DNA of 62,976 nucleotides, filler included, from Octopus bimaculoides (lineage: Eukaryota), in assembly GCF_001194135.2 (NCBI RefSeq). It is 6 parts of 5 records of this genome, joined end to end, with 100 filler letters (N's around TTAATTAATTAA, not from the genome) between each part and the next. Parts side by side here need not be neighbours in the genome. Positions count along the whole stretch, not along the records: positions 45,503 to 53,822 come from NC_068989.1; 5 more parts are not named here. One strand, given 5' to 3'. Made by a program: the position numbers and the translations under genes. Of the stretch, positions 9,701 through 54,278 are shown piece after piece (the first letter of the stretch is position 1; every line of letters begins with the position of its first letter). Under the pieces are notes generated by a model. The model made no database searches. It was not told the DNA's origin and worked only from the letters and a program-made list of their open reading frames with translations.

Positions 9701-10619
9701 CACCTAATGATTTATAAACATCTAATTATGAAAGTGGGAAAGCAATTTCTATTCATTTTATATATATGTATATATATATATATATATNNNNNNNNNNNNN
9801 NNNNNNNNNNNNNNNNNNNNNNNNNNNNNNNNNNNNNNNNNNNNNNNNNNNNNNNNNNNNNNNNNNNNNNNNNNNNNNNNNNNNNNNNNNNNNNNNNNNN
9901 NNNNNNNNNNNNNNNNNNNNNNNNNNNNNNNNNNNNNNNNNNNNNNNNNNNNNNNNNNNNNNNNNNNNNNNNNNNNNNNNNNNNNNNNNNNNNNNNNNNN
10001 NNNNNNNNNNNNNNNNNNNNNNNNNNNNNNNNNNNNNNNNNNNNNNNNNNNNNNNNNNNNNNNNNNNNNNNNNNNNNNNNNNNNNNNNNNNNNNNNNNNN
10101 NNNNNNNNNNNNNNNNNNNNNNNNNNNNNNNNNNNNNNNNNNNNNNNNNNNNNNNNNNNNNNNNNNNNNNNNNNNNNNNNNNNNNNNNNNNNNNNNNNNN
10201 NNNNNNNNNNNNNNNNNNNNNNNNNNNNNNNNNNNNNNNNNNNNNNNNNNNNNNNNNNNNNNNNNNNNNNNNNNNNNNNNNNNNNNNNNNNNNNNNNNGA
10301 TATTTTTACAAAAATTAATAAAGAACCCGAGTGTATTGAATAAAGGCTTTGTTCTTTGTGAGTCTTACGTTTATTTCTAGCACAAGAGCTATTGCGGCAA
10401 TCTTCCAGAAAGGATTCAGTGGTCACTTTCCACCGAAATCTTTAGTGGCCATCCTTCTCAAAGGCTTTTTGCAGTCATCGAAGAATACAAACAGATTTCT
10501 AGTGTACAAGAATGAATCCCATTTGTTCATAGGACTAAACTTTAAAAGAAGCAACAAGATGACTAATCGTTAGCAACTAAAATAATAGAATATTTATTTT
10601 ATCGAACAGGGACGAAAAT

Positions 10620-14333: not shown

Positions 14334-15063
14334 CACTAGCGTAGCCAGAGTGTGTGCCGCCGGGGCGCGAAATTATTTTTCCCGCGAGAGTTCCGGACCG
14401 CCGTTATGAACTCATTTGCTTACAGCCAATCAGAGCTCAAACTATCAAACTAATTTATGAGCGCAGAACAAGTGATGGGTGATCAGATAAGGTCACTTGG
14501 TTAAGGAATGACCATGCTTCTTTTCGCTTTTAAGAACGCTTGTTATTCTTGTTCTTGTGTCAAACATGGCTGCCTCTGCGTAGTTATTTGTGTTGTTGTT
14601 TACTTTGTAAAACAGTAAGGGGAGAGGGTTGCTAGCACATCACCCTCTACCCACATCTTTCCCATCCACGTCTTTACCATATAGGACCCTAACAAAATCC
14701 GATAATAGGTATAGATGCAAATCTATCTAATAACTTGTTCTCTTCTAAAACCAAGCATAACTTGGTGATCGGTCGACTTACAACACCATCCTTAGTCTTG
14801 AGGTTACTTGGCAGACTGTGTTTGTTAACTTGACAACAAGGTCAGGGTGAGTTCTGATTGGGTGTATGTAAATGAGTTCATTACTGGGGTCCGGAACTCT
14901 CGTGGAAAAAAAATTTCGCGTCCGGGGCGGCCCGTTAGTTTGTCGCCTCGGGGCCCCCACGAAAAGTACATATTATCTACAGCAGACACAAAAGTGGTTC
15001 CACCCCTATAGAAGTGCCGCCCGGGGCGCAACGCCCCTCCGTCACACTCTAGCTACGATAGCG
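14334..15063. mobile_element. Non-autonomous hAT-like DNA transposon (730 bp)
   Basis: Imperfect 15-bp TIRs (CACTAGCGTAGCCAG / CTAGCTACGATAGCG, 12/15) and an 8-bp TSD, CTTACTAT (14326-14333) / CTTACTGT (15064-15071). It also has an internal ~83-bp inverted repeat (14356-14438 vs 14849-14931). Confidence 0.8.
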
Positions 15064-15163
15064 CTTACTGTTATATTCGTTTGTGTTGACGAATGGAAAG
15101 CAAAACAGTGACACACACATACAGACATGCACACACACACACACACATGCTCTCACACACACA

Positions 15164-15199
<36 letters not shown>

Positions 15200-17029: not shown

Positions 17030-19879
17030 CTTGGCGTTTATTTTTTTTTGTTTGTTAATTCTAAGTTTCAAAAATTCGAAACGACCGAACATATAATTCG
17101 TGTGTCACATACACTCGGAGAACACCACATCACTTTCGAAATATATTTTGAGATGAAGAGATGAAGTAGAGACAACATCCATCGCATGGTCAATAGTAGA
17201 TATGACATTAGCGTTTAGGTATATGTCGAATTACTGTAAACTCCGTCTCTCAAAGATACTTCGTATTTTGGTCGTGTGGAGATATCGGTGAGAGACATAT
17301 ATAAAGATGTTATGTCTCACACGCTTAGATGGGTCAGAAGAAAGCAGAGAGCTAATCACCGTATACTTGGTAGAACTTAAACCAGTTAACCGACATAGAT
17401 TAGCGTGGGTTTGTTGAGCTTTTAGTTTATTGCTTAACAATATCGAATAAATTACTTTGACTAAGCTGCGTCCAGGCAAATGTTTGGCTGAGAGTAGGGA
17501 AAAGTTGTTAAGTTCCAATTCAGTCCTGATTGAGCAGAACCTAAGATCAAAGACTTTGAAATCGTCACTATAGCACTTCCAATTTGATGAAATGAAAAAT
17601 GAGTTTGTTGTAGAGAGACAACACGAGTGCTACTCTTCGAGTCTCTGTGATTAGTACCTAGTGACATACATACATACATACATACACATATACATGCATA
17701 CATACATACATACATGCATGCATACATACATATATATACACACATGCATTCATACATATATGCTTACGTATATACATACAGGCTGGCAGGCAGGCAGGCA
17801 GGCAGGCAAGCAGGCAGATAGGCAGGCATGCATGCATACATACATACATACATACATACATACATACATACATACAGTCGGTTTTTGTTTGTGGTCTATA
17901 AGTAAGAATCAAAGTACCTTGTTTGTCAGATTAGAATATAAACCCAACATTAAGGATGTAAAAGAATTCTATGAACGATTAAATAAATAATTAATTAACC
18001 ACCGTCAACAAGCGGTCTACACTAAGGTTGAACAAGGTAACTGTTGTAGTTTTCGTTACATGCAATCGATTTCACTTTTATATTGTCTTTACACATCGAG
18101 CCAAATAAGGATTTTTTTTTTTTTTTTGTTAAATTTATTGACATGCTCTTCCGAATGGATTCTGGTGGCAAGAATGATATAGAAAGGTTTTGCAACTAAA
18201 ACAATACAAGCCTTCTATCAAGCATTGGTTCTCCCGAGAACTTAAGCATTGATTTAGACAATTTTTTTTTATCTCCGTTCTCACTCTAATGATTTTTACT
18301 TAACAGGATTGTACACATACCATATGAAAGAGTTTTTCCCACACATCTAAGATATCTGAAAACAAAAATGTTGACGGCGAAAATGTCCACGATAAGAATT
18401 GTTTACGGAAATAATTGCGGTAAAAAATACCTGACGCGAAAATTAACAACCGCCTCACGTTAAATAAAGGAGAAAATATCAAGCGGTTCGCCTTCCGGCT
18501 CAGCCCTGATTGTACTATAATAATATGAGAGGTAATCTTCTAATTCAGCTCGTAGTGTCGTCTGCTTAGTGTCTGTGATCGATGAGGAGATAGTTATTCC
18601 GAAATGCTTGCATCTCAGTCTAGGTAGATGGCGCTACGAGCTGATCTATGCGTATACAAACCATTGTCAGCAAGTGAGATATATTCTCCGTGACAACACG
18701 CAATAAATTGCTTGTTCCCCAGTTCGAACGTGCATCAAGCATATTCGGACTGATAAAACAATTTCAAAATAATATTATGAGGAAAATATTACTTGAATGG
18801 AAATCACTTTAATATGAAGGAGAGGCATTATCACGTTATCACGTGATCGACCAGATTATCGGATGTTATAATACATCACTGGTCACTATGCGCTGTGTAT
18901 CGTCTTAGCTTTCGAATGATACCCCCCNNNNNNNNNNNNCCCCCCCCGTTGGCTGGACGAGCAGACCAAAATCCCCCCTGATCGGAAGTCTTCTGCGTCG
19001 TAATGTTATCCATTAACATCCGAGTAGACTGAAGCAGCGTGAAAGGAAGTGTTTTACTAAAGAATACAACGCGTACGAACCTTCACGCTTTATTATTATA
19101 CTAAAAAAAATACTGCATCAGGCTTGAAGTATGATGACTGACTAATGATATAAAAGAGTGGAACAGTGCCTGTTTCATCGTTTCCGACACATTCCGTGAA
19201 CACGGTGATATTGAATGCAAGCCTCGTGTTCTCCTTTATTTGAAACCTAGCGCAGGGTTGTGAAACATAAGACTCACAGAAGGGAAACGGCCTGACAGTA
19301 TTCAGGCTCTTGGCTGAATTTATATCTTTTGTCTTTTACTTGCTTCAGTTATTAGACTGCGGCCATACTTGGGTACGTCTTTGACAAGTTTCAGTCGAAC
19401 AAATCGACCTCAGTACTTAAAAAATAATTATTGATTTTAAAATATTCTGTAAAATATACAACTAGCATGTGTTCAGAACTGAAACCCCAAAAAGAGCACA
19501 TTGGGGAATCTTGAATGAAAAGCAAGGTAAACGAAAGTTATCAATCCATATACAAGATGTGACTTATTTCACTTTCATTTTGTCTGAACATGCCAATCCA
19601 AATAGAAAGGCTTTCTTTTCTTTTCTTTTCTCTTCCATTTTTACAAATTTACGGATGGATTCTGGTGACATGAACAATATTACAAGGCCTCGCAGTTGAA
19701 AGTATGCAACCCTTTTATCAAGCATTTGGTCTTTTCAAGAAATGAATGCATTTATTTGGACAATTTCTATCTCCGTTATCATTCTTAGAACTTTTACTTA
19801 ATTGAATAGTATACATAGCATGTGATGATTTGTTTTTCACACATCTCTGCACACAAACCTTTTTAACACCTCGTATTCT

Positions 19880-24559: not shown

Positions 24560-25760
24560 AACCATGTATGGAAATCTACCTGGGAATACTTGAGGCAGAT
24601 GGAATCAAACGCAACAACATGAAGGAAAAAACAAAAAGAGAGTACCTGCGGCGAGTGAGAAAAATATTGGCTTCAAAGCTGAATGCAAGAAACATAATTT
24701 CGGCAATAAACTCGCGCGCAGTCGCAGTAGTTCGGTATGGCGCTGGAATCCTGAAGTGAACAGAAGAGCTAAAGGAGATAGCCAGGAAGTCAGGAAAGCT
24801 CCTAACGATGTGTGGACCCCATCATCCACGTGCAGACACTGATCGCCTATATATGAAGAGAGAAAATGGAGGAAGGGGACTGATAAATGAGGAAGACTGT
24901 GCACATCAAATTCAGGAGCTTAATGAGATACCTAGATCAAGGTAAGGAAACCTTTCTACTGACAGTTAGGAACGAGGGAGAATTGAAAGCAGAGAAAAAA
25001 GAAAAATAAAGGAAAAAGTTCAAAAAGGACATGAAGAAGAATTACGCAAGAAGGGTCTACATAATCAATTCCATATAGCCACAACAGAAATTTCTGGAAA
25101 AAATAGCTGGGATTGGCTGATGAAATGAACCCTAAAAAAAGAGAACGAGAGCACTATACTGGCAGCACATGACCAAGCTTTAGCCTCGAACTGGAGAGTC
25201 AACCTTAGGAGTGAGCGAGTATCTCCGCCGTGCTGCATCTGTAATAGAGTGGATGAAACCATTGCCCATATCACGAACGAATGCCCCAGACTTGCCCAAA
25301 ACCAATACAAGTTGCGACGACACCATCAGGTAGCGAAAGTGCTACTGTGGAAACTGTGCGAAAAGTGGGGGTTAGAGAGAGGCAAGACGTGGTATGAGCA
25401 CAAACCACAGAGAGTGGCAGAGTTGGAGACTAGCAAAGTCCTTTGCGATTTTCCAGTCCAAACAGATCAGGTGCAAGAGCATAACAGACTGGAACTGGTG
25501 GTGGTGGACAAGGTGCACCATATATGCTATATAGTTGACGTTGCATGCCCCTGGACCCACGAATAGTCAAGAAAGAAGCCGAAAAGATAGATAAATACAA
25601 CCCTCTTAAGTACGAAACAAACCGGCTATGGAAAATGAAGAAGGTGAAGATAGAGCCAATTATTGTTGAGTCCTTGGAAACAGTATCAGAAGGCATCAAA
25701 GGGAATATAACAGTCAGAATAATGGGGAAAGTATTAGTTGAAAAGAATAAATAGCATAGT
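24560..25760 (+). mobile_element. 3' half of a second R4-clade subfamily (thumb, CCHC, endonuclease), degenerate
   Basis: EYLRRVRKILASKLNARNIISAINSRAVAVVRYGAG, RLYMKRENGGRGL, CCICNRVDETIAHITNEC, RRHHQVAK, ELVVVDK, YIVDVACP. Contains stops and frameshifts. Confidence 0.9.
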
Positions 25761-32648: not shown

Positions 32649-33489
32649 ATGTGTGTGTGTGTGTGAATGTGTGTGTGTATATATANNNNNNNNNNNNNNN
32701 NNNNNNNNNNNNNNNNNNNNNNNNNNNNNNNNNNNNNNNNNNNNNNNNNNNNNNNNNNNNNNNNNNNNNNNNNNNNNNNNNNNNNNNNNNNNNNNNNNNN
32801 NNNNNNNNNNNNNNNNNNNNNNNNNNNNNNNNNNNNNNNNNNNNNNNNNNNNNNNNNNNNNNNNNNNNNNNNNNNNNNNNNNNNNNNNNNNNNNNNNNNN
32901 NNNNNNNNNNNNNNNNNNNNNNNNNNNNNNNNNNNNNNNNNNNNNNNNNNNNNNNNNNNNNNNNNNNNNNNNNNNNNNNNNNNNNNNNNNNNNNNNNNNN
33001 NNNNNNNNNNNNNNNNNNNNNNNNNNNNNNNNNNNNNNNNNNNNNNNNNNNNNNNNNNNNNNNNNNNNNNNNNNNNNNNNNNNNNNNNNNNNNNNNNNNN
33101 NNNNNNNNNNNNNNNNNNNNNNNNNNNNNNNNNNNNNNNNNNNNNNNNNNNNNNNNNNNNNNNNNNNNNNNNNNNNNNNNNNNNNNNNNNNNNNNNNNNN
33201 NNNNNNNNNNNNNNNNNNNNNNNNNNNNNNNNNNNNNNNNNNNNNNNNNNNNNNNNNNNNNNNNNNNNNNNNNNNNNNNNNNNNNNNNNNNNNNNNNNNN
33301 NNNNNNNNNNNNNNNNNNNNNNNNNNNNNNNNNNNNNNNNNNNNNNNNNNNNNNNNNNNNNNNNNNNNNNNNNNNNNNNNNNNNNNNNNNNNNNNNNNNN
33401 NNNNNNNNNNNNNNNNNNNNNNNNNNNNNNNNNNNNNNNNNNNNNNNNNNNNNNNNNNNNNNNNNNNNNNNNNATATATATGTATATAT

Positions 33490-33522
<33 letters not shown>

Positions 33523-40048: not shown

Positions 40049-40084
<36 letters not shown>

Positions 40085-40645
40085 ATATAAACTTCTAATT
40101 ATTATTATTATTTAAAAGAATTTTATTCTCTCCCTCTCTCTCTCTGTTCGCTATTATATATTTTCGGCATACTGCGTGGGTGTGTGATTTTTGTGTTTGT
40201 TAAATTGATGTAGAATATGGTGTATATTTTGGAAACGCGTGTTATGGAGGACATTTTTTCATCTCTACATATGTATATTCACTTTCTCTTTTTAATTCAG
40301 AGTCAATTTTGATCGTCCACCTGCTTTGTGAGAATCTTGTTTTAACCATGATCCTTAAATCTTAAAGTTTCACAGATTTTTATCCCCCCAGATATCATGA
40401 TCATTCGTGGCATATGAATTAAGCATTCGAATGTATGTTTGATTGTGTGTGCGCACGCTCACGTCTTTTCTTTCTTTCTTTCTTTCTTTTTTTTTGTTTA
40501 TTTCATTTAGAATCAATTTTGATCGTCCACCTGTTTTTTTATAGCAAGGTTGTGAAGGAAAGCATCTTGTTTTAACCGTTATCCTTTAAATCTTGGCGGT
40601 CTTGCAGATTTTTGTTGTCCCAGATATTGCGATCGATTGAAGAGC
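38383..40645. repeat. Three diverged copies of a ~140-bp local repeat (about 38387, 40301, 40511)
   Basis: Shared core AAT.Y.GATCG.CCACCTG ... ATCTTGTTTT ... AAATCTT ... GATTTTT ... CCC.GATAT..YGATC. Confidence 0.8.
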
Positions 40646-42568: not shown

Positions 42569-44849
42569 TACATTCGATTAAAACCTGTAAGCTAACGGTT
42601 CAGCAAAAGCGACGGATAAAATAAATACCAGATAAAATAAGTATTAAGACATTCATTTTCTAAAACCTTTCCAGGCGGTGCCTCAGCATATATATATATT
42701 ATATATATATAATACAAATAATAAATGAGTATATGCATATATACGTACTTGTATGTACATACTTACATCTACCTTTATATATAGATGCATATCTGGGTAC
42801 AGGACATTGCAAACAAAACGTAGACAAAATGATAAACAAGTGCAGAAAACACACAGGCCACATAGAGAACATTTCCTTCATCAGCTGCCACCATTCAACA
42901 CTGGCGTTATATATATATATATATATATNNNNNNNNNNNNNNNNNNNNNNNNNNNNNNNNNNNNNNNNNNNNNNNNNTATATATATAACCACAGAGTTAC
43001 TATCGGGTTTGCAGTAGAAAATAAGATGCCTCGTGATTGAAAATCGAGTTTCTTAATCCTTCATTTAATGTTTTAATGAAGCGGAATTTTCTGTAAAATA
43101 TATGCATGAGTTTCGTGCCAAAATATATTTGGGAAACGCTGTACTAATATTATGAATAACATATCTGTTTTCAGTAACAAACTATTTCGTATAGAGGGCA
43201 TAAAGATTAAAATAAAGTAAATTTCGCTTTGTTGTATGGGATTTCGCTTTGTCTTATGGAATATAAAGCGTCGAAGTGATCGCAGAGCAACGTGAAATGA
43301 AGTGTTTTACCCAAGAACACAATGCACCACCTGGTCTAGGAATTGAAATCATGATCTAGTGAGCTGAGTTCAACACCCTAACCACTAAGCCATGCACCCT
43401 CATTATAAATATAGCTCTGATGCTCTAACGCAGGAACAAGTGCCATGGGACCCATGTTCACCAAAGAACCGAGTTGTCAGAAAAGGAAAGGAAAATTGCT
43501 ATATTATTCAACTAGAGATCAGTTTCGATCTCGGATCTTTTCTGTTTGGCTGCCAATTTTCAATCGCTTCAATTTGCATTTGAATTGATTTCATAATTGG
43601 TGTAATGATGTAGTTTTATATGCTAATCAATGCCATGGAATTCATTTTCGCCATAAATCAGTAAATAAAGTTATTAACTTTTAAAGTTTGCAAATTTTGG
43701 GTAATTTTAGCCAATCGTAAGCCAGACACATTCATGCCTGTATCCATAGTAACAAGCCAAACACGAGGACTCTTTTGTCTGCGAGATAGCACGTGCTGAG
43801 AAATATATTCTACGCGAAATGTGCCCATCTGCTGCTTGTATACTAGCCGAGAGATGTTTTTGCATAATCGTATGAATTCCCGAGTATAGAATACAAATTC
43901 GCAACAACTTTCTGAAAATTCCAAAAAATTAAAGAAAGTTATGTCGTGCGTAAAGGAGAAGTTGAATTTATTTACAGTTTCATGTTAAAACGCATCACGC
44001 ACAAAATGACAGCTTCCAAATCCTGTTTTCTGATTGGGTGAAAATGATCAAACTTTAAACCTCTACAACTTTAAAAAAAAATTTCTGGAAAAAGTGAAAT
44101 ACCTCCTGAGATTCAACTTGGAAAACTACATTAATACACTAAATTTTGAAATTTTCAATTAACTTCAAAATTTCCATAGATGAAACCAAACAGAAAAGAT
44201 CCTTGATCTCTGCTGTCCGGACCCGTTTTGGGGCATTCAACTAACGTATATTGTTCCACCACATCGTTCGGAAATGTCATACTTTGTAAACCCCACCACC
44301 ATCACCAAAACATCGCCTCGTTAATACATCTTTAAATCTGAATACAAAACAGAGAGCTGTCAACAGGAGCGAACGTCCTACCAACACAACAAACCACGTG
44401 ATTAAACTGCCTGAAACCAAAATGCCTGCTGATAACTACCGAAAAGCATAACAGTCATAGACAACACTGCCAATCATTTAATTAGCCTAAAGCGGAATAT
44501 GTTGATACTTATCAAAAATATATGACGTCGCCGACGATACTACCAGTCACGTGATTATTTCTGAACCCAAACTTATCTGCTGTTATCAGTCAATAGGAAT
44601 TGAACGTTGGACGTCATCGATAACGCTGCGAACCACGTGATCGATTACTTAACAAACCACAAGAAAAATTTAAAGATGCGCTAAATATTTTGAATACTTT
44701 GAACTAGCAGTTCTCACGCCGACAGAAATCAGATCAACCTCACCTTTCCCTGCAAAACATTAATGAACATATTTTGCCCTTCCTTTATTAATGAAAATAC
44801 AAAATGGTTTGTATTGATATTAACCACAAGTAGGCTTTGTAACCAGCTG

Positions 44850-44975: not shown

Positions 44976-45584
44976 TCAATATAGCTCACACCAGATAAGG
45001 TATTGGTTTCCTCATCGCTAGTCGCTAATTCATTCCTTCTAACTTAGGTTAACTTCTCTTAGCATAGCGTTCTCGCCATCCTACTAACAGCGTAACCCTG
45101 TTGTCTCTCTGCAACATCTTTGAGCTAACAGCCTTGTAGTGAACAGAATGGAGATCGTCGGGTCAAAATGGTTTAAGACACTTTGTTTTAACCAGCATTA
45201 ACAGGCCTAGGAGTGCAAGGTAAAGGAGAAAAGCGGCTGCACATATACCGCCTGCACTGACCCGTAATCCTCATACTTGCAACATCTACTGTTGTTTTTG
45301 CAAATCGTTGGTGGGATTCGATATAATTGAGAAGAAAAGTGCAGGTTGTCGGATCCTCATACGTTGAAAGCGACAGGAGGGTCCATCATACATACATATA
45401 TANNNNNNNNNNNNNNNNNNNNNNNNNNNNNNNNNNNNNNNNNNNNTTAATTAATTAANNNNNNNNNNNNNNNNNNNNNNNNNNNNNNNNNNNNNNNNNN
45501 NNTATATACACACACACACATATGTATATATCGTCAACTAAACGTGACTAAGGGTGTAAATAACACATTGCTAGAAATGGGAAA

Positions 45585-45899
45585 TAAAATGCTCCAATGC
45601 TGTTACAAAGCACATAATATATACTTTGATAGGGGCTGCAATCGCGCCGAACACTTAACCGAGAATTCCTTATTTCATGGTGAATATATATACACTGATA
45701 CGGCGAGCTAGCCCGGAATCAACCGAACAAGCTGGCTCCTCTGTGTTTAGCCCCTTATGGGCAATAAAGAAATAAGATGGCTACGGAAATGGCCGGAACT
45801 GGTTGATCAGTCTATGGAATTCTCGCTTCGGTTTTAGGGTTGATTGCAGCCCCTATCAGAGTATATGTTATGTGCTTTGTAGAAGCATTAGAGTACTTT
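45585..45899. mobile_element. Foldback/MITE-like element with ~58-bp inverted repeats
   Basis: ACAAAGCACATAATATATACTTTGATAGGGGCTGCAATC vs GATTGCAGCCCCTATCAGAGTATATGTTATGTGCTTTGT. No clear TSD. Confidence 0.7.
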
Positions 45900-46374
45900 A
45901 GCTCCTAAGCTTCCATCTGTATTATGCCTTTATGGCAAATGTAATGAAATAAAGAAGCATGCTTCCCAACCACATGGTTCCTGGTTCAGACCCTCCACGT
46001 AATACCTTCAGCAAGTGTCTTCTCTTGTAGCTTCGGGCCGACCAGTGCCTTGTGAGTGAATTTTGGTAGACGGAAACTGAAAGAAGTCCGTGATGCATAT
46101 ATATATACGTATATATTCTTTTACTTGTTTCAGTCATTTAACTGCAGTCATGCTGGAGCACCGCCTTAAAGGTCTTTTAATCGAAGAAATCGATGCCAGG
46201 ACTTATTCTTTGTAAACATAGTACTTATTTTATCGGTCCTTTTGCAAATGACATGAAAACAGCACAAGTAAACACTGAGAAAGGACTCTTCATCAGTTGT
46301 CAACTGTCTGTCTACTCCTCATTTCGAGCATTCAATGACAATAGAGTCTTCAAAGTTAGTTGCTTCCACAAATT

Positions 46375-46740
46375 CTAAAATAAGATTTAGGATTTATGGA
46401 GGGTCAAAGTTGAGAACAACAAAATGACAGTGGAGATATACAAGGAAACCGAACGAAAACAAACATGGAGGGTCGTTAGACCAGAACGAGAGGAAAATAG
46501 TGAACTCTGAGAGAAACTTTTTTTTAAAAGAGAAAATATAGAAGAGAGAGAAAAACACGTCCGTTCTTTTTAACGTCCGTGCAGGGAAAGAAAGATGGTC
46601 ACGTGAGGAAAAGAAAGATGGACGATGGTCACGTGTAGGCAACGAGACAGAGAGAAAGAGGGAGGGAGAGAGAGACAAATAGAAAACGGTGAAGAAGGGG
46701 GGGGGAGAAAAGAGAATTAGAGAAGGATGAAGGAAGAAAA
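46375..46740 (-). repeat. Second copy of the PLE-associated non-coding block seen at about 590-1050
   Basis: Collinear shared motifs with 590-1050. Confidence 0.75.
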
Positions 46741-46945
46741 CAGTATAGAGTAGAGAGTTCCATCAAAAAGGTGAAGATAAACTTACTTGGAAGTGGATGC
46801 GTCGCATTCAATTAAATAACAAATAAAATATAATATATATATAAAATACAGTTTTATATTTAAGAGATTAGGAATTATGTACATTATTTATATTATTTAA
46901 ATTATTTACATTTGACGGATATTTGTCCTCATCTTGTTTGTTGTT

Positions 46946-46991
46946 AACACAAACTTTCGGCTGACATACCCTCCAGCCTTCATCAGGTGTC
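46946..46991 (-). ncRNA. Degenerate minimal type I hammerhead-ribozyme motif in a PLE pLTR-like repeat
   Basis: Minus strand reads GACAC-CTGATGA-A-GGCTG..CAGCC-GAAA-GTTT-GTGTT. Stems I and II and the core are present, but stem III does not pair. Confidence 0.45.
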
Positions 46992-47038
46992 TTGGGGAAA
47001 TTTCGAACCTGGGTTCTCATTCCTAAGGTAATTTTCGA

Positions 47039-47092
<54 letters not shown>

Positions 47093-47094
47093 CA

Positions 47095-47466
47095 AGGTTA
47101 CTGACTGGAATCGAACTCGGAATCTTGGGGCTAGTAGCCGGCGCTCTTAGCCACTACGCCATATAAATCCTAAGCAGTATTTTTTCCGACTGTTCAGAGT
47201 TAAAATCCCACTGAGGTCAATTTTGCCTTTCATCCTTTCAGAATCGACGAAATAAAATACCAGTCAAGTAACAGAGTCAATGCAATCGACTTGTCTCCTC
47301 CCTTCAAATTGATCGCCTTGTACTAAAATCAGAAAGAATGTTTAAAAGTCATAATTGAGACAATGAAGGGAGCAAGATTCGGGGGACTTTCATCAGGCCT
47401 AATACAGCAAACCGTTATGTGCGTCTGTCATCGTGATGCATTGTAAATAACATTTGCAGGTGTATG
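47095..47466 (+). repeat. Diverged duplicate of the intronic segment preceding the aquaglyceroporin exon (cf. 48105-48489)
   Basis: Collinear over ~360 bp with scattered substitutions. It ends TTTGCAG|GTGTATG versus CTGCGCAG|GTATATG at the real exon. Confidence 0.9.
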
Positions 47467-47848
47467 TGTGGTTGTGTGGTAAGAGGTTTGCTTCCCAATC
47501 ACATGGTTTCGGTTACAGCCCTTCTACTATGGGTCCGAGCTAACGAAAGCTTTGCTAGTGGATTTGGCAGGCGAAAACTGAAAGAAGCCCTTCGTATGCA
47601 GAATGTATGTATGTACGTATGTATGTATGTATCTGTGTGTATTTGCCTTTGTGCCTGTGTTTGCTCCCTACCACCGCTTGACAACCGGCATAGGTTTGTT
47701 ACGGCTCTTCGGCAAAAGTGACTGTTATGTAATTATCATATTTAAAAAATATGTTCTGGCGTCTATTCGTCCAACTAAAGCCCTTCACGGTGGTATTCCA
47801 TCATGGCTATAGTCCAATGAGTGAAACCAGTAAAAGATAAAAGAAAAC

Positions 47849-47965
47849 AGATGCATGCTATATATCACAAGTTTGACATAAACAAACAGTCATACTTTGG
47901 AAAGAAAAAAGATGCATGCTATATATCACAAGTTTGACATAAACAAACAGCCATACTTTAGAAAG
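47849..47965. repeat. 61-bp tandem duplication
   Basis: AGATGCATGCTATATATCACAAGTTTGACATAAACAAACAG.CATACTTT.GAAAG occurs twice. Confidence 0.95.
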
Positions 47966-48482
47966 CCACTAATTTTAAAATGGGATGCTTTGGTCGGTAT
48001 GNNNNNNNNNNNNNNNNNNNNNNNNNNNNNNNNNNNNNNNNNNNNNNNNNNNNNNNNNNNNNNNNNNNNNNNNNNNNNNNNNNNNNNNNNNNNNNNNNNN
48101 NATTCAGGTTACTGCCTGGAATCGAACTCGGAATCTTGGAGTTAGTAGCCCACACTCTTAGCCACTACGCCATATTAATCCTAAGCAGTATTTTTTCCGA
48201 CTGTTCTGAGTTAAAATCCCACTGAGGTCAATTTTGCCTTTCATCCTTTCAGAGTCGACGAAATAAAATACCAGTCAAGTAACAGAGTCAATGCAATCGA
48301 CTTGTCTCCTCCCTTCAAATTGATCGCCTTGTATTAAAATCAGAAAGAATGTTTAAAAGTTATAATCGAGACAATGAAAGGTGCAAGATTCGGGGGACTT
48401 TCATCAGGCCTAATACAGCAAACCGTTATGTGCGTCTGTCATCGCGATGCATTGTAAATATGATTTCTTTATTTCTGCGCAG

Positions 48483-48700
48483 GTATATGCAACATTCTTC
48501 TTCTGTGGTGGAATACTTGCAATTATTGACTCCAACAGTGCGGTTTCAAGTCCAAACATGGCGCCATTGGCTATTGGTTTGCTTCTTACAGCTGTTGCCA
48601 GTTCTTATGGCTTAAACGGTGGTCCAGCAGTAAACCCAGCATTAGATTTGGGACCACGAATTGTCTTGCTGCTTGCAGGTTGGGGAATAGAACCATTTAC
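48483..48700 (+). CDS. Aquaglyceroporin (MIP family, GlpF/AQP3-7-9-10 type) internal exon encoding TM4-TM5-loop E with the second NPA box
   Basis: Acceptor TTTCTTTATTTCTGCGCAG|, donor AC|GTAAGA, 218 bp, phase 0 to 2. Translation is VYATFFFCGGILAIIDSNSAVSSPNMAPLAIGLLLTAVASSYGLNGGPAVNPALDLGPRIVLLLAGWGIEPFT. The D after NPAx, GPR and the AGWG..F ending are glyceroporin hallmarks. From memory, the boundaries match exon 5 of vertebrate AQP3. No other exons of this gene were found in the window. Confidence 0.95.
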
Positions 48701-49065
48701 GTAAGATTCTTAACCTTATCTCTTTAATTGTATGTTCATATGTGCATGCATAACTCTTCCGCTCCCTCTCTCTCATATGTACATATATGTATATACGTCT
48801 ACATGTATGCGCGCCTGTGTTTGTGTATTCTTTTATCCTTTTATTCTTTTACTTGTTTCAGTCATTAAACTGTTGCCAAGCTGGGGCACTGCCTTGAAAG
48901 AATTTAGTCGAACGAATCTACTATAGGACATTTTTCGAGCCTGGTACATATTCTATCAGTCTCTTACTAAGCGACGAGGACGTAAACGCATCAACACCGG
49001 TTGTCAATTGGTGCTGGTGTGTTTACAGTCACAAAGTTACAAACACACACACACACACACGCACG

Positions 49066-49103
<38 letters not shown>

Positions 49104-49744
49104 TATATACCCCTAATGTAGATCTCNNNNNNNNNNNNNNNNNNNNNNNNNNNNNNNNNNNNNNNNNNNNNNNNNNNNNNNNNNNNNNNNNNNNNNNNNN
49201 NNNNNNNNNNNNNNNNNNNNNNNNNNNNNNNNNNNNNNNNNNNNNNNNNNNNNNNNNNNNNNNNNNNNNNNNNNNNNNNNNNNNNNNNNNNNNNNNNNNN
49301 NNNNNNNNNNNNNNNNNNNNNNNNNNNNNNNNNNNNNNNNNNNNNNNNNNNNNNNNNNNNNNNNNNNNNNNNNNNNNNNNNNNNNNNNNNNNNNNNNNNN
49401 NNNNNNNNNNNNNNNNNNNNNNNNNNNNNNNNNNNNNNNNNNNNNNNNNNNNNNNNNNNNNNNNNNNNNNNNNNNNNNNNNNNNNNNNNNNNNNNNNNNN
49501 NNNNNNNNNNNNNNNNNNNNNNNNNNNNNNNNNNNNNNNNNNNNNNNNNNNNNNNNNNNNNNNNNNNNNNNNNNNNNNNNNNNNNNNNNNNNNNNNNNNN
49601 NNNNNNNNNNNNNNNNNNNNNNNNNNNNNNNNNNNNNNNNNNNNNNNNNNNNNNNNAAGAACATAAATGTGCAACAAGGTGGAAAAAGAGCACTCAAATA
49701 CCAGAGGTAGAGTAATATGCTTCATTTAAAAGCAGCAGAAATAT

Positions 49745-49798
49745 AACAAAAAACTGTTACTCGGAGTTTCACGTTCCGGTTCATCGGACAGTTTTGTT
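49745..49798 (-). ncRNA. Minimal type I hammerhead-ribozyme motif (U4C variant) in a PLE pLTR-like fragment
   Basis: Minus strand reads AACAAAACTGT-CCGATGA-AC(CGGAAC)GT-GAAA-CT(CCG)AG-TA-ACAGTTTT(TT)GTT, giving an 8-11 bp stem I, short stems II and III and a GUA triplet. Confidence 0.6.
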
Positions 49799-50229
49799 AA
49801 AAATGGGAGAGAAATGACGATGCAATCAAAACTAATATAAATTAAAAAACATGGATCTGTTTCATTGGTCGTTTCAAATAACGGTCTTATGTATGCAATG
49901 AACAAAATAAACAAAACAAATGAATTCAATATAGATTCATCCTATTTTTTTAAAATCAAAGAAAACCTTAAATTGAAAAGTGAATTTAAAATACATATTG
50001 TAAATAATTATATTCGAATTAACACATTAAAATTAAAATAAAGTTTACGCTGCATTAAAATAAATAAAAATTTTACAACAGTATACGCATACTAGACTAT
50101 CTACAACATACATATATGCATCAAAATACACAGATTCATACGTACAGACAATATACGTATATAGGCATATATTTGTAAGACATAAATACATGCACGAATA
50201 CACCTGTATACATATACACATATGCACGC

Positions 50230-50690
50230 AATCATGCCCGCGCATGTCTTAAAGCCTTCACTTTATTTTGTAGTCTCGTTTTCCATATTTTTAATCTTTC
50301 CCTGTGAGATATCTAATCTTCTGGTGACTACTACCCCTCCTGCATAGATCAATAAAATAGTGTCTCCTATATTTTTAGCATCTATCCTATTGATAACAGA
50401 ATCTACTTCCCCAGTCATTTCTGGCAGCTTCCTTCTGTTGGTACCTTCCAATGCTGACAATCTTTTTCTTACGTTTTTTACTCATTACCTCTTGCAACTT
50501 ATCTAAACTCTCCTGATCTTCCTCACTTCAATCACTTAACTCGCTGGTGCCAGTTGCCTCTTCCTTATTGATAGCGCTATTATTATTTTATCCTTTAGAT
50601 TCTTCTTTGGTTTGAGCTGTATCTCTTATGTTGTTTTTTTTTCCTATTGACTGGTCTTTCTTTTCCAGTTCTCTATTCTATCTTCACTCC
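50230..50690 (-). mobile_element. R4-clade non-LTR N-terminal fragment
   Basis: KKRLSALEGTNRRKLPEMTGEVDSVINRIDAKNIGDTILLIYAGGVVVTRRL resembles the pre-RT region of R4/Dong-type ORFs. Confidence 0.65.
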
Positions 50691-50739
50691 TAATAATGAA
50701 CCTAATACCGGTTCCTCACTAAATAAATATCCCCTCACA

Positions 50740-52090
50740 AGTTGATACCGAACCCCCCTACAAATCTATGTTGTTTTAGACGCCCAACCTCTTGTCCTTT
50801 AGATAATCGCTGTCTCACAAAAAACATCATTTACAAGTGTACAGTATCAGCTGCCAACTACATATATATATCGGTTTGTGCAGTACCACCTTCAAAGCTA
50901 GAGTGAACAACCACGACTCCAGTTTCAAGTCCCAAACAAAATCCAGCAGTACATCTTTATCTCAGCTTATCCATAAACTAGAGAATTATTCAACTCTTTA
51001 CACTCTTAAGTGGTCCTTAGTCACCCATGCCAAACCATACAGCAGCTATAAGTATGATCTCTGCATAGCCGAGGTCTTAGCTATTGTGCAATCCACGGAT
51101 TGCCTTAACGAACGCAGCAGTATAATCTTTTCTTGCAAACATCGATCACTAAATCTATTCTCAAACTACAAATAACAACCCCCACCCCACCTACATCTTT
51201 TCCCCCTAGCCTTAATACACTTTTACCCCTTATTCATCCTCACTACCACTATATATTAAACCACCAATATATTCCCATTATTTTCCCTTTAGTTCCCTAC
51301 TGTCGTTTATATATTTCTCTTCCCTTTATCTTCCCTTGCCGTTTATGACCTTTTTTCCCTTATTTCTCCTGCCCCCCTCCTACTTTCCTTTGTAAACTTA
51401 CAAGTACAAACGTACACCTCTACTACTTCATACTGTAAACACGCTCGCCGCACACAACAATATACATTTCTTAATTGGTAAAAGTAGATGCTACAATTCT
51501 TTCCCATTCTCTCTTGATATCCATTTCTAATACTACCCCATTTCTTCATCCATACTTTCTCTCCCCATTGACCACAAATATTTCCCCACCCTCTTCCCTC
51601 TTCCCTCCACATTATCTTTTTTCCAAATATCACTCCCCTTGCTAATCTCTGTTATTCGGCCAAAATAGCCCTATTGAATACTACCGGTCAAATGACCTTG
51701 CTTAAATTCCTCATTCTTCTCTCTCCCTTATGTTTTTATTCCTTTTATTCTTTTATTTTTATTCCTAATTCCTCTCTACATTTATATTCTCCACTTTTAC
51801 AGTGCTCTCTACACATTCTAATCGAATCTTCCATGTGTTAACATGTACCTCCTTGCGACCATGTAAACTTGCATTTGATCAAGGTACCCTTGGCCTGACG
51901 AGTAGCCTGCGGTATACACTTCGCTTGGATATTCACCACTTCCGAGGTTCGACTTGCTATGAAACATATGTAGCCCGGATCTTATCTATTCCATTCCATA
52001 ACTCTTGTATTCTTATTCGCATACCCGGCAACCCTGGTCACCTACTGTGAAATATAAAACTAGCTTTTTTCAGTTTATCGCACTTCGATA
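50740..52090 (+). mobile_element. 3' part of a Penelope-like element: GIY-YIG endonuclease plus pyrimidine-rich pLTR
   Basis: CCFRRPTSCPLDNRCLTKNIIYKCTV..NYIYIGLCSTTFKARVNNHDSSFK...LKWSLV...LCIAEVLAI...LNERS...CKHRSLNLFSNYK* (stop at 51173-51175). The downstream non-coding region contains a hammerhead motif. Confidence 0.9.
51892..51975 (+). ncRNA. Type I hammerhead-ribozyme motif with intact core and palindromic stem III
   Basis: GGC-CTGACGA-GTAGC(49 nt)GCTAT-GAAA-CATATG-TA-GCC. The core is canonical and the predicted cleavage is after A51972. Confidence 0.7.
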
Positions 52091-52356
52091 CGAAAAAGAT
52101 CCACCATTGTCCCTGAACGTTCTTTTTCAATATTTACTAAGGATTGCTTGAAACTTAAAATCATCTCACGACGATCACATGCATTCATATCAAAAATAGG
52201 ACCGCAGAAAATATGAAGAGTAAAAATATTATTCTAATATCTTATTTATTTATTTATATTCATAAAATAAGGATAAAAATCACGTTAATGAGCATGGAAA
52301 TAAGCAATTTATATATTAAATTAATAATTATATATATATATATATACTTATTTTAA

Positions 52357-53789
52357 GGGAGAAAGTCGAAACAAGACTTGTCTCGGATCTTTTTGATTTG
52401 ACGGGCAACATTTTTCATTTATGTTTTATGTAGTGTTTTTGGTACCGAAACACTTTCAAACTTCGTATACTTGTATATTTTGTGTTATAGAACAGATAAA
52501 AAATTTTGTATTCGAACTTATTTAATGTTAAAAATTGACTTATTTCGATAATTTCAACCAATCACTGACGTTTATTCAGTTGAATACAGTTACTGATGTG
52601 GCGGTGTATATGGTATTAATCCCTGTTAGTTCTGACATTTCCGATTTACAAGACTGTTCGTAAACACGTGTGTTGCTTATTTTTTCAATTAGCGAAAAAT
52701 TGTTACAAACACAGATACGCACAGCGTAATTTATTATATAAACAATATATGCGTATAAATTAACATTTTTTCTGTAATTTTGTCTGCTTCAAAAGAAAAC
52801 AAACCAAAAAAACCGGATGAAATATGTCAACAGGGAATAACAGTTTTGTCACCGGCAAAAAATTATTGTTTACAAAACAGCAGTAACTGTATTCAGCTGA
52901 ATAGACATCAGTGATTGGTTGAAATTACAGAAATACGACAACTTTAACATGAAATAACTTGCGATGTACAATTTTTTGTTAAGAAGGCTAAGAGAAAAAG
53001 TTATTTTATATGACACATTCTACCAGTGTCCCAAGTTTGAAAGTGTTTCGTTAAGAAAACAAGTGTTGCCCGTCAAACCAAAAAGATCCCTTGTCTCCTC
53101 CATACGGAATTAATGTCCAAACATTACGAAGCTACCTAAAAAAATTCCATAAACACATGCGATTGAAAGCGGGCTAGTGAGAAGATATTTAAAAGGACTC
53201 CACATTAGTTGCAAATTAGCTAATTTCAAGATTATCTTCTTAAACAGATTTTCTTCTATCGTCAACGCAATATATGTAAAAAAAAATATACGAGCAGGTG
53301 TTAATACAAAGCCATAACAAAGCGAGTTTGCACGTCTATGCACAAACACTTGCAAGTATAGATTCGAAAAAGTCAGACTAAAGTCATCTCACGACAACCA
53401 CATGCATTTATATTAAAAAAATAGGACCGCAGAAAATACGGGCTTTTGATGAGGAGTAAAAATATTATACTAATGTTCATTTATTTATTTATATTCATAA
53501 AATAAGGATAAAAATAAGGATAATTATCAGGTAGTCATGCGATTTAAGATTTTAATCTGTTTAAGATTTTAATCTTGAAATTAGCTAATTCGTAATTAAT
53601 TTCATTTTATTTTATTCATTTTATCTAGTTTCAGCTCATGAGCTGTGGCCATGCTGGGGCACCGAAAATATCTTCTTACTAGCCTGCTTTCAATCGCTTA
53701 TATTTATGGAGTTGTTTCGGTAGCTTCATAATGTTTGGACATTAATTCAGTATAAACTGAGGAGATAAGTCTTGTTTCGACTTTATCCC
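52357..53789. mobile_element. Kolobok-like non-autonomous DNA transposon (TTAA TSD, GGG...CCC ends, ~125-bp TIRs)
   Basis: TTAA at 52353-52356 and 53790-53793. The terminal 28 bp match 26/28. Once the nested element is removed, the TIR continues at 53098-53190 versus 53665-53760. Confidence 0.8.
52385..53089. mobile_element. 705-bp non-autonomous DNA transposon nested in the left TIR of the Kolobok-like element (GG termini, 8-bp TSD; possibly Merlin-like)
   Basis: TIR GGATCTTTTTG.TTTGACGGGCAACA (25/26), perfect TSD CTTGTCTC at 52377-52384 and 53090-53097, and further internal inverted blocks (about 52553-52595 vs 52881-52924). Confidence 0.85.
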
Positions 53790-54278
53790 TTAAAAGAATT
53801 ATATATATATATATATATATATNNNNNNNNNNNNNNNNNNNNNNNNNNNNNNNNNNNNNNNNNNNNTTAATTAATTAANNNNNNNNNNNNNNNNNNNNNN
53901 NNNNNNNNNNNNNNNNNNNNNNTACATATGTATTATGTATGTATGTATGTATGTGGTTTACTGTTCCGTTAAGGTAAGATCAGCAAAAAACAAATGCTCC
54001 ATCCAATGAGAGATAAATATCATTTCATGTACACAGCATAAAGATACAAGCTACTAATAGGTTCTTGCTTTGGAGACACGGGTCTAAGCAGGTTTTTAAA
54101 ACGTGCCTTATGTCTCCAAGCAATTTGCGGGCTCTGAGCCCCTGGTGTGTTTTATTTGCAAATCAGGACTCTGGTACCAGCTATCTCATCTGTTGTCCAT
54201 ATTACCATCAGTCGTTCCCCTTCCCCATATTATTCACCGAAACCATCCCTCTACGAGCCACTAAGTCAACTTCTACAT

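Follow-up and report, generated by a model that had tools for sequence, protein, structure and literature searches.

A divergent, arginine-less aquaglyceroporin of octopods, recognised from one exon in the Octopus bimaculoides genome

The exon at the locus and the gene it belongs to

The window analysed here is a stretch of 62,976 nucleotides (nt), filler included, joined from parts of the Octopus bimaculoides genome (RefSeq assembly GCF_001194135.2). The piece that concerns us, positions 45503-53822 (from NC_068989.1), holds a single coding exon of a gene in the aquaporin (MIP) family, the fifth of seven in an octopod gene whose product is best called a divergent, arginine-less aquaglyceroporin; we refer to this gene and its orthologues as clade A. 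The exon codes for the end of helix 4, helix 5 and loop E with the second NPA half-helix, which correspond to residues 149-221 of the Octopus sinensis orthologue, and its translation (48483-48700) reads VYATFFFCGGILAIIDSNSAVSSPNMAPLAIGLLLTAVASSYGLNGGPAVNPALDLGPRIVLLLAGWGIEPF(T). The AG acceptor abuts the exon in all four species compared (O. bimaculoides, O. sinensis, Octopus vulgaris and Argonauta hians), and the features of the locus are collected in Table 1.

On its own, the exon scores 36.1 bits (E = 7.7e-9) with the Pfam MIP family (PF00230), above the curated cut-off of 25, and its peptide matches the solved structures of AQP3, GlpF, AQP10 and AQP7 with E values of 3e-11 to 3e-9. Both results agree with the first-pass annotation of the window, which had proposed an aquaglyceroporin-type MIP in which leucine replaces the arginine of the selectivity filter. 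The exon sequence, its coordinates, its splice signals and the TTA codon for this leucine were all as described there when we re-read them. The same annotation had listed a Gly-to-Ala change in helix 5 and a Tyr-to-Pro change in loop E relative to AQP3, and the HMMER alignment of the exon to AQP3 gives the same pairs (Ala with Gly203, Pro with Tyr212), along with Leu opposite Arg218. A tblastn search with GlpF and AQP3 found no second MIP exon within 45503-53822; the GlpF numbering was validated by the recovery of W48, G191, F200 and R206. The absence of other exons from the piece is explained by the spacing in O. sinensis, where the neighbours of exon 5 lie 8.8 kilobases (kb) upstream and 5.6 kb downstream (exon 6).

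A word-indexed protein search with the 73-residue exon gave no match, and the orthologues came instead from an exhaustive, profile-based search of representative proteins. This returned two near-identical proteins, one from O. sinensis (XP_029642182, "aquaporin-8 isoform X2", and XP_029642181, "aquaporin-9 isoform X1") and one from O. vulgaris (CAI9727840); further searching added an Argonauta hians protein that is 80% identical. The automatic names "aquaporin-8" and "aquaporin-9" carried by these genes are misleading. Against the annotated O. sinensis aquaporin, the exon is 93.5% identical over a 77-codon tblastn stretch (E = 6e-41), and 69 of the 72 exon 5 codons are identical between the window and that species. 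No clade A orthologue from a squid or cuttlefish was found in the protein collection searched, where the Sepia match belongs to the second group of sequences described below (clade B).

Gene models were made by threading the proteins onto three genomic loci, from O. sinensis, O. vulgaris and A. hians. They consist of seven coding exons of 78, 121, 138, 107, 218, 152 and 110/107 nt. The first six do not differ in length between O. sinensis and A. hians, and each O. sinensis exon has a full-length alignment in the O. vulgaris genome. Every intron in the O. sinensis and A. hians models is GT-AG, no stop codon interrupts the frame, and the gene is intact, with canonical splice sites, in all three species. 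The deposited O. vulgaris protein CAI9727840 (200 residues) is mis-modelled, omitting exons 3, 4 and 6; the seven exons intact in that genome encode a 307-residue protein with just one residue different from its O. sinensis counterpart. The introns in the window are collinear with those of the O. sinensis gene, at 84-88% identity over three globally aligned blocks.

Table 1. Features of the Octopus bimaculoides piece (positions along the window) and of related cephalopod genes and transcripts
Feature	Position or locus	Strand	Details
Coding exon 5 of 7, octopod arginine-less aquaglyceroporin (clade A)	48483-48700	+	218 nt, phase 0 start
Intron 4 pyrimidine tract and AG acceptor	48461-48482	+	TGATTTCTTTATTTCTGCGCAG; tract 48461-48480, AG 48481-48482
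Intron 5 donor	48701-48706	+	GTAAGA; same hexamer in 4 of 4 species
Helix-5 filter position (GlpF G191 / AQP3 G203)	48597-48599	+	Ala, GCC
Loop-E filter position 1 (GlpF F200 / AQP3 Y212)	48624-48626	+	Pro, CCA
Second NPA motif	48633-48641	+	AAC CCA GCA, canonical
Loop-E filter position 2 (GlpF R206 / AQP3 R218)	48642-48644	+	Leu, TTA, for an otherwise invariant Arg
Asp-Leu-Gly-Pro-Arg aquaglyceroporin signature past the second NPA	48645-48659	+	Kept (Froger P2 = Asp, P3 = Arg); Asp codon 48645-48647, Gly-Pro-Arg 48651-48659
Intron 4, 3' part	45503-48482	+	Repeat-rich; 100-N gap 48002-48101; collinear with O. sinensis intron 4, 84-85% identity in two aligned blocks
Intron 5, 5' part	48701-53822	+	530-N gap 49127-49656; exon 6 beyond the piece
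O. vulgaris exons 1-7	L003 (OX597822.1): 10001-10078, 15055-15175, 19252-19389, 24710-24816, 33281-33498, 40058-40209, 44521-44630		
Clade B, O. sinensis "aquaporin-9-like" (P0288) and A. hians "aquaporin-9" (P0290)	L011, L012		NPV / NPA-Ile-Asp; filter A/I/C/I
Clade B, Sepia esculenta transcript in many Logan RNA-seq assemblies (P0140)	L004-L009		NPT / NPA-Leu-Asp; filter V/I/F/L
Clade B, SRR27666075 transcript (P0289)	L010		NPG / NAT-Leu-Asp; filter A/I/I/L

The selectivity filter and its history in cephalopods

At the positions of GlpF W48, G191, F200 and R206, the clade A orthologues have Ser, Val, Pro and Leu (with Ala as the second residue in the window), compared with Trp/Gly/Phe/Arg in GlpF and Phe/Gly/Tyr/Arg in AQP3; the Ser pairs with AQP3 Phe63 in an ungapped HMMER alignment. 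As judged from these alignments, none of the four residues that form the extracellular aromatic/arginine constriction has been retained. The change is thus wider than the first reading of the exon had noted, since it takes in the whole aromatic/arginine motif and recurs in a second arginine-less group of paralogues; the helix-2 residue was invisible to that reading because its exon lies outside the piece. Of all pore residues in the aquaporin family, the filter arginine is, to our knowledge, the one most conserved, and it is held to be essential for solute binding and for the exclusion of protons and cations. Of the 288 full-length relatives that were aligned, 270 carry Arg here, and the exceptions all come from cephalopods.

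In other respects the protein looks like a member of the family. AlphaFold2, given a 60-sequence alignment, predicted for the O. sinensis orthologue a structure with the helices as expected (predicted local distance difference score (pLDDT) 89.9, predicted template-modelling score (pTM) 0.87), and the model supplies the six helices and two re-entrant NPA half-helices of the MIP fold, the first NPA motif and the full fold being seen by way of this orthologue. The best Foldseek matches were AQP3 (template-modelling (TM) scores 0.86/0.89, root-mean-square deviation 1.6 Å), AQP7, AQP10 and GlpF, with Trypanosoma brucei AQP2 (TbAQP2) next (0.80/0.92) and water-selective aquaporins ranking below all of these. 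Sequence searches give the same order: the full O. sinensis orthologue scores 154 bits against Pfam MIP, and its best PDB matches are AQP10, AQP3, AQP7 and GlpF (E = 1e-49 to 1e-36), whereas the water-selective AQP2, AQP5 and AQP1 reach E = 1e-16 or weaker. In both sequence and structure, then, the protein is closer to the aquaglyceroporins than to the water-selective aquaporins.

Residue by residue, the picture is mixed. Both NPA motifs are canonical in the clade A orthologues (the second is visible in the window), the buried glutamate of helix 1 is kept, and Froger positions P2 to P5 are Asp, Arg, Pro and Ile, of which P2 and P3 can be read in the window. Position P1 (Tyr108 of GlpF) is Cys in both clade A orthologues, compared with Tyr in 96% of the 270 canonical relatives; Leu stands in place of the filter arginine characteristic of aquaglyceroporins, and the aromatic corner and helix-5 glycine are represented by Ser, Pro and Val (Ala in the window). 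We settled on "divergent, arginine-less aquaglyceroporin" because the protein descends from within this branch but lacks its defining filter features.

The leucine is shared by all three of the other species, each of which has NPA-Leu-Asp, encoded with TTA in O. sinensis and O. vulgaris and with CTA in A. hians, so that the codon has changed synonymously. Between O. sinensis and A. hians, the ratio of non-synonymous to synonymous substitution (dN/dS) over exons 1-6 is 0.077 by the Nei-Gojobori method, with dN at 0.12 and dS saturated at 1.58; for exon 5 of the window against O. sinensis, it is 0.16, from six synonymous and three non-synonymous changes. The exon is 95.9% identical to that of O. 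sinensis, compared with 88.7% and 88.9% for its immediate flanks and 84-88% for intron sequence farther away. These substitution patterns show that the replacement has been kept by strong purifying selection across Octopus and Argonauta; on the same comparisons, the gene is functional and conserved, and within the MIP family it belongs to the aquaglyceroporins.

That the leucine is nonetheless a base-call or assembly artefact, or that we are looking at a pseudogene or a dead duplicate, strikes us as barely credible. The assembly here is gappy (see the runs of N in Table 1), a duplicated block of 300 nt lies just upstream of the exon, and the piece shows a single exon, all of which might raise suspicion. 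Against this, leucine stands at the same codon in three independent assemblies of other species, one of them with a synonymous codon, the reading frame and splice sites are intact in every species compared, the exon is better conserved than its flanks, and dN/dS is low; for these reasons we rejected both sequencing error and pseudogene decay for the lineage, in line with the first-pass annotation. Its claims that the change is lineage-specific and that A-to-I editing could not restore the arginine hold equally well, since Arg is missing only in cephalopods and is found in 270 of 270 other relatives, and since TTA can be edited only to TTG, which leaves the residue a leucine. Its argument that the codon is two substitutions away from Arg is correct for TTA but is weakened by the CTA of Argonauta, one step from CGA; the canonical Argonauta paralogue has AGA, and a single change leads from this to the ATA (Ile) found in O. 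sinensis for the second arginine-less group. It had also asked whether the Leu, Pro and Ala of the exon are conserved in orthologues: Leu and Pro are, whereas the Ala is specific to O. bimaculoides, the other three species having Val (GTC or GTT) through a single C/T difference at 48598.

The second arginine-less group, which we call clade B, came to light through a first survey that returned three more sequences with Leu at the filter position: P0140, its fragment P0087, and P0137. Following the lead from P0140 and P0087, a search with P0140 gathered P0288, P0290, P0140 and P0289 (Table 1). P0137, a 90-residue entry from an ENA metagenome assembly, is an exon-like MIP fragment with NPA-Leu-Asp and with Ala and Leu at the two neighbouring filter positions; its identity to every other retrieved sequence is no more than about 45%. 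The first NPA motif is degenerate throughout clade B (NPV, NPT or NPG), and dN/dS between its O. sinensis and A. hians members is 0.075, a constraint equal to that on clade A. Three of the read sets with the V/I/F/L transcript (SRR19578105, SRR23936182 and SRR20545810) are larval RNA-seq from Sepia esculenta (PMC9538352, PMC10571815 and related papers). Because a cuttlefish transcriptome carries this member, clade B is transcribed and is older than the split between octopus and cuttlefish.

The two arginine-less groups have several changes in common at sites that otherwise show high conservation (GlpF numbering): Asn for Asp at 151, Leu for Thr at 214, Val or Ile for Gly at 191, and the loss of Tyr108. 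By neighbour-joining on all columns, they are sisters with 96% bootstrap support and lie beside the mollusc aquaglyceroporins with a G/G/Y/R filter; removing the 22 filter and shared-change columns lowers this support to 59%, and both branches are long. The codons at the arginine position are AGA in the canonical A. hians gene, ATA and ATT in octopod clade B, TTG (Leu) in both clade B transcripts (Sepia and SRR27666075), and TTA and CTA in clade A; these codons can thus be reached from Arg by single-step paths. One ancient loss of the arginine is plausible from this tree and the shared changes. We do not claim a single origin, because of the long branches and the drop in support; the loss is in any case an old cephalopod trait, which arose either once before the duplication or twice in parallel. 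The positions of the introns are uninformative on whether the arginine-less groups belong together, since the seven-exon layout is common to all three groups of cephalopod aquaglyceroporins.

The nearest relatives by sequence, and neighbours in the tree, are the mollusc "aquaporin-9/10-like" proteins (scallop, Mytilus, Batillaria; 44-46% identity). In these, the helix-2 aromatic has already gone (G/G/Y/R), and human AQP10 too has Gly there, but Arg, the helix-5 Gly and an aromatic residue or Ile at the first loop-E position are all kept in both; the octopod gene has changed all three of these positions, and additionally Tyr to Cys at Froger P1. The close canonical relative from Mytilus californianus ("aquaporin-10-like", P0155) has NCA for NPA in loop E, with the following Arg-Asp kept. 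Within the cephalopods, the canonical "aquaporin-7-like" genes (O. sinensis P0171 and A. hians P0176) occur in the same genomes with the same seven-exon layout, a 218-nt exon 5 and the aquaglyceroporin signature residues, but have a W/G/Y/R filter with an AGA arginine codon and are 36% identical to the arginine-less gene.

The flanking introns

The remainder of the piece is intronic and rich in repeats. A direct repeat of 300 nt with 95% identity between copies (47095-47394 and 48106-48405) flanks the 100-N gap, its second copy stopping about 20 nt ahead of the pyrimidine tract of the exon. The O. sinensis locus carries the repeat in full at L002 28993-29283, 6.5 kb upstream of the exon, and just its last ~83 nt (L002 35651-35733) are found upstream of the exon. 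The repeat either belongs to an interspersed family or was duplicated by the assembly at the gap. Simple repeats occupy 47840-47965 (a tandemly doubled 61-nt unit), 47041-47092 ((TTA)17) and 49039-49099 ((AC)30), and 52150-53822 is filled with other short dispersed and inverted repeats. Intron 5 also contains an open reading frame of 112 codons (50837-51175, + strand) without a Pfam match, whose start (..YIG....F..R...H..) shows, by eye, a possible resemblance to a GIY-YIG-type mobile-element nuclease. Scans of the piece for transfer RNAs and against Rfam gave no match.

Precedents for the filter and the putative behaviour of the pore

Two known channels come closest to the octopod filter, TbAQP2 and human AQP11, and both are convergent rather than homologous precedents. 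The filter of TbAQP2 consists of I110, V249, L258 and L264, and Leu264 together with the aliphatic residues has been linked to the passage of larger solutes (PMC8311954). Like the octopod protein, TbAQP2 belongs to the aquaglyceroporin branch, has Leu for Arg and has non-aromatic neighbours in the filter (I/V/L/L compared with S/V(A)/P/L), and the predicted octopus structure superposes on it with the TM scores given above. The differences are nevertheless substantial: the two are only about 30% identical; the NPA motifs are altered to NSA/NPS in TbAQP2, whereas clade A has NPA/NPA and clade B departs from this in its first motif; and the all-aliphatic filter of TbAQP2 contrasts with a smaller one in octopus that is polar in part (Ser, Pro). 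Permeation by drugs and cations has been shown for TbAQP2, whereas the octopus gene is known here from its sequence and predicted fold. In the tree, the octopus gene falls with the aquaglyceroporins of molluscs, and we therefore take the resemblance to be convergent; common descent with TbAQP2 was rejected on this position and on the low identity.

Human AQP11 has Leu219 in place of the arginine, alongside Val, Val and Ala in the filter, and its pore is hydrophobic and wide (at least 4 Å), with no distinct constriction (PMC12857728). Its V/V/A/L filter is very like both S/V/P/L and the V/I/F/L of clade B. It belongs, however, to another class of MIP (unorthodox, with AQP12), has NPC as its first motif, resides in the endoplasmic reticulum and forms trimers of seven-helix subunits, whereas in the octopus protein NPA-x is still followed by Asp and other aquaglyceroporin signatures are retained. 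AQP11 was absent from the best 60 PDB sequence matches and the best 50 structural matches of the octopus protein. Membership of the AQP11/12 class was rejected on this absence, on the retained Asp, and on a first motif that is NPA rather than NPC or NPT.

In GlpF and the aquaporins, the filter arginine provides hydrogen-bond donors and a positive field, and a Trp/Phe corner binds glycerol through its carbon backbone. Clade A retains an intact, selected aquaglyceroporin scaffold in which the extracellular constriction has been completely re-lined, and we think it probable that the result is a wider, uncharged pore for neutral solutes. Such a constriction would offer no positive charge, no hydrogen-bond donors and no aromatic corner for the glycerol backbone, and the classic glycerol-selective filter would no longer operate; the size cut-off would be broader or shifted. 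The exclusion of ions would rest on the intact NPA/NPA region, and protons and organic cations would meet a lower barrier, though not necessarily none. Beitz et al. in 2006 and Wu et al. in 2009 are said to have found a lower proton barrier when the filter arginine of AQP1 was removed. We favour a wider, uncharged pore because both known cases with Leu at this position, TbAQP2 and AQP11, have wide pores and broadened permeability.

Several observations weigh against this reading. By rough arithmetic with standard residue volumes, the side-chain volume of S/V/P/L is not below that of the G/G/I/R filter of AQP10, so that "wide" rests mainly on the loss of the arginine and the aromatic residues. 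The window itself shows exon 5 only, and the intactness of the other exons is assumed from the orthologues. No clade A transcript was present in the protein collection, where this clade is represented by genome-derived models only. Finally, the intact NPA/NPA pair, unlike the altered motifs of TbAQP2, speaks against free passage of cations.

We regard it as unlikely that the protein is a cation or large-organic-cation channel of the TbAQP2 type, in which the loss of Arg would open a route for charged solutes (such as ammonium, methylamines, polyamines or protons); the first-pass annotation had raised a cation-permeant channel as an alternative to a wide pore. Such a channel would fit the Leu at the arginine position, as in TbAQP2, as well as the negative-to-neutral Asp-to-Asn change at GlpF position 151 in both arginine-less groups, which suggests a remodelled charge network around the filter, and AQP1 Arg195 mutants reportedly leak protons. 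The NPA region, however, is reportedly a cation barrier in its own right and is canonical here, where that of TbAQP2 is NSA/NPS, and the filter has gained no acidic residue. A related and more sweeping proposal, to which we would likewise give little weight, is that coleoids possess an ancient two-member arginine-less family serving as low-selectivity conduits for large organic solutes or cations such as methylamines, ammonium or polyamines; if true, this solute or cation route would be one not known from other animal aquaglyceroporins, and would be convergent with TbAQP2, the drug-conducting channel of trypanosomes. It is quite improbable, in our estimation, that the protein is conserved mainly for something other than solute transport, with a closed or dewetted constriction and a role in adhesion, as a regulatory subunit of heterotetramers, or in a gas- or lipid-facing capacity. 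Purifying selection shows that there is a function without saying which, the filters of clade B are very hydrophobic (V/I/F/L, A/I/C/I) and its first NPA motif is degenerate, and AQP0 and Big brain are reportedly MIPs with mainly non-channel roles. Yet clade A keeps both NPA motifs, the buried helix-1 glutamate and the loop-E signature, and human AQP11, with its similar V/V/A/L filter, has an open and wide pore.

Phylogenies that include cephalopod Aqp3-like sequences exist (bioRxiv 10.1101/2022.07.25.501387), and we found no description of an arginine-less cephalopod filter in full-text open-access papers and preprints, a scope that falls short of proof. The octopod and cuttlefish genes are animal aquaglyceroporins that lack the filter arginine and are under strong selection, in two groups of paralogues of which at least one predates the split between octopus and cuttlefish. 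Going by its re-lined filter, the channel probably passes different molecules from its ordinary relatives, and it is a candidate route for unusual solutes in cephalopod physiology, such as osmolytes or those of nitrogen excretion. The family thus offers a natural experiment on what the filter arginine is for, and an animal counterpart to TbAQP2 and AQP11.

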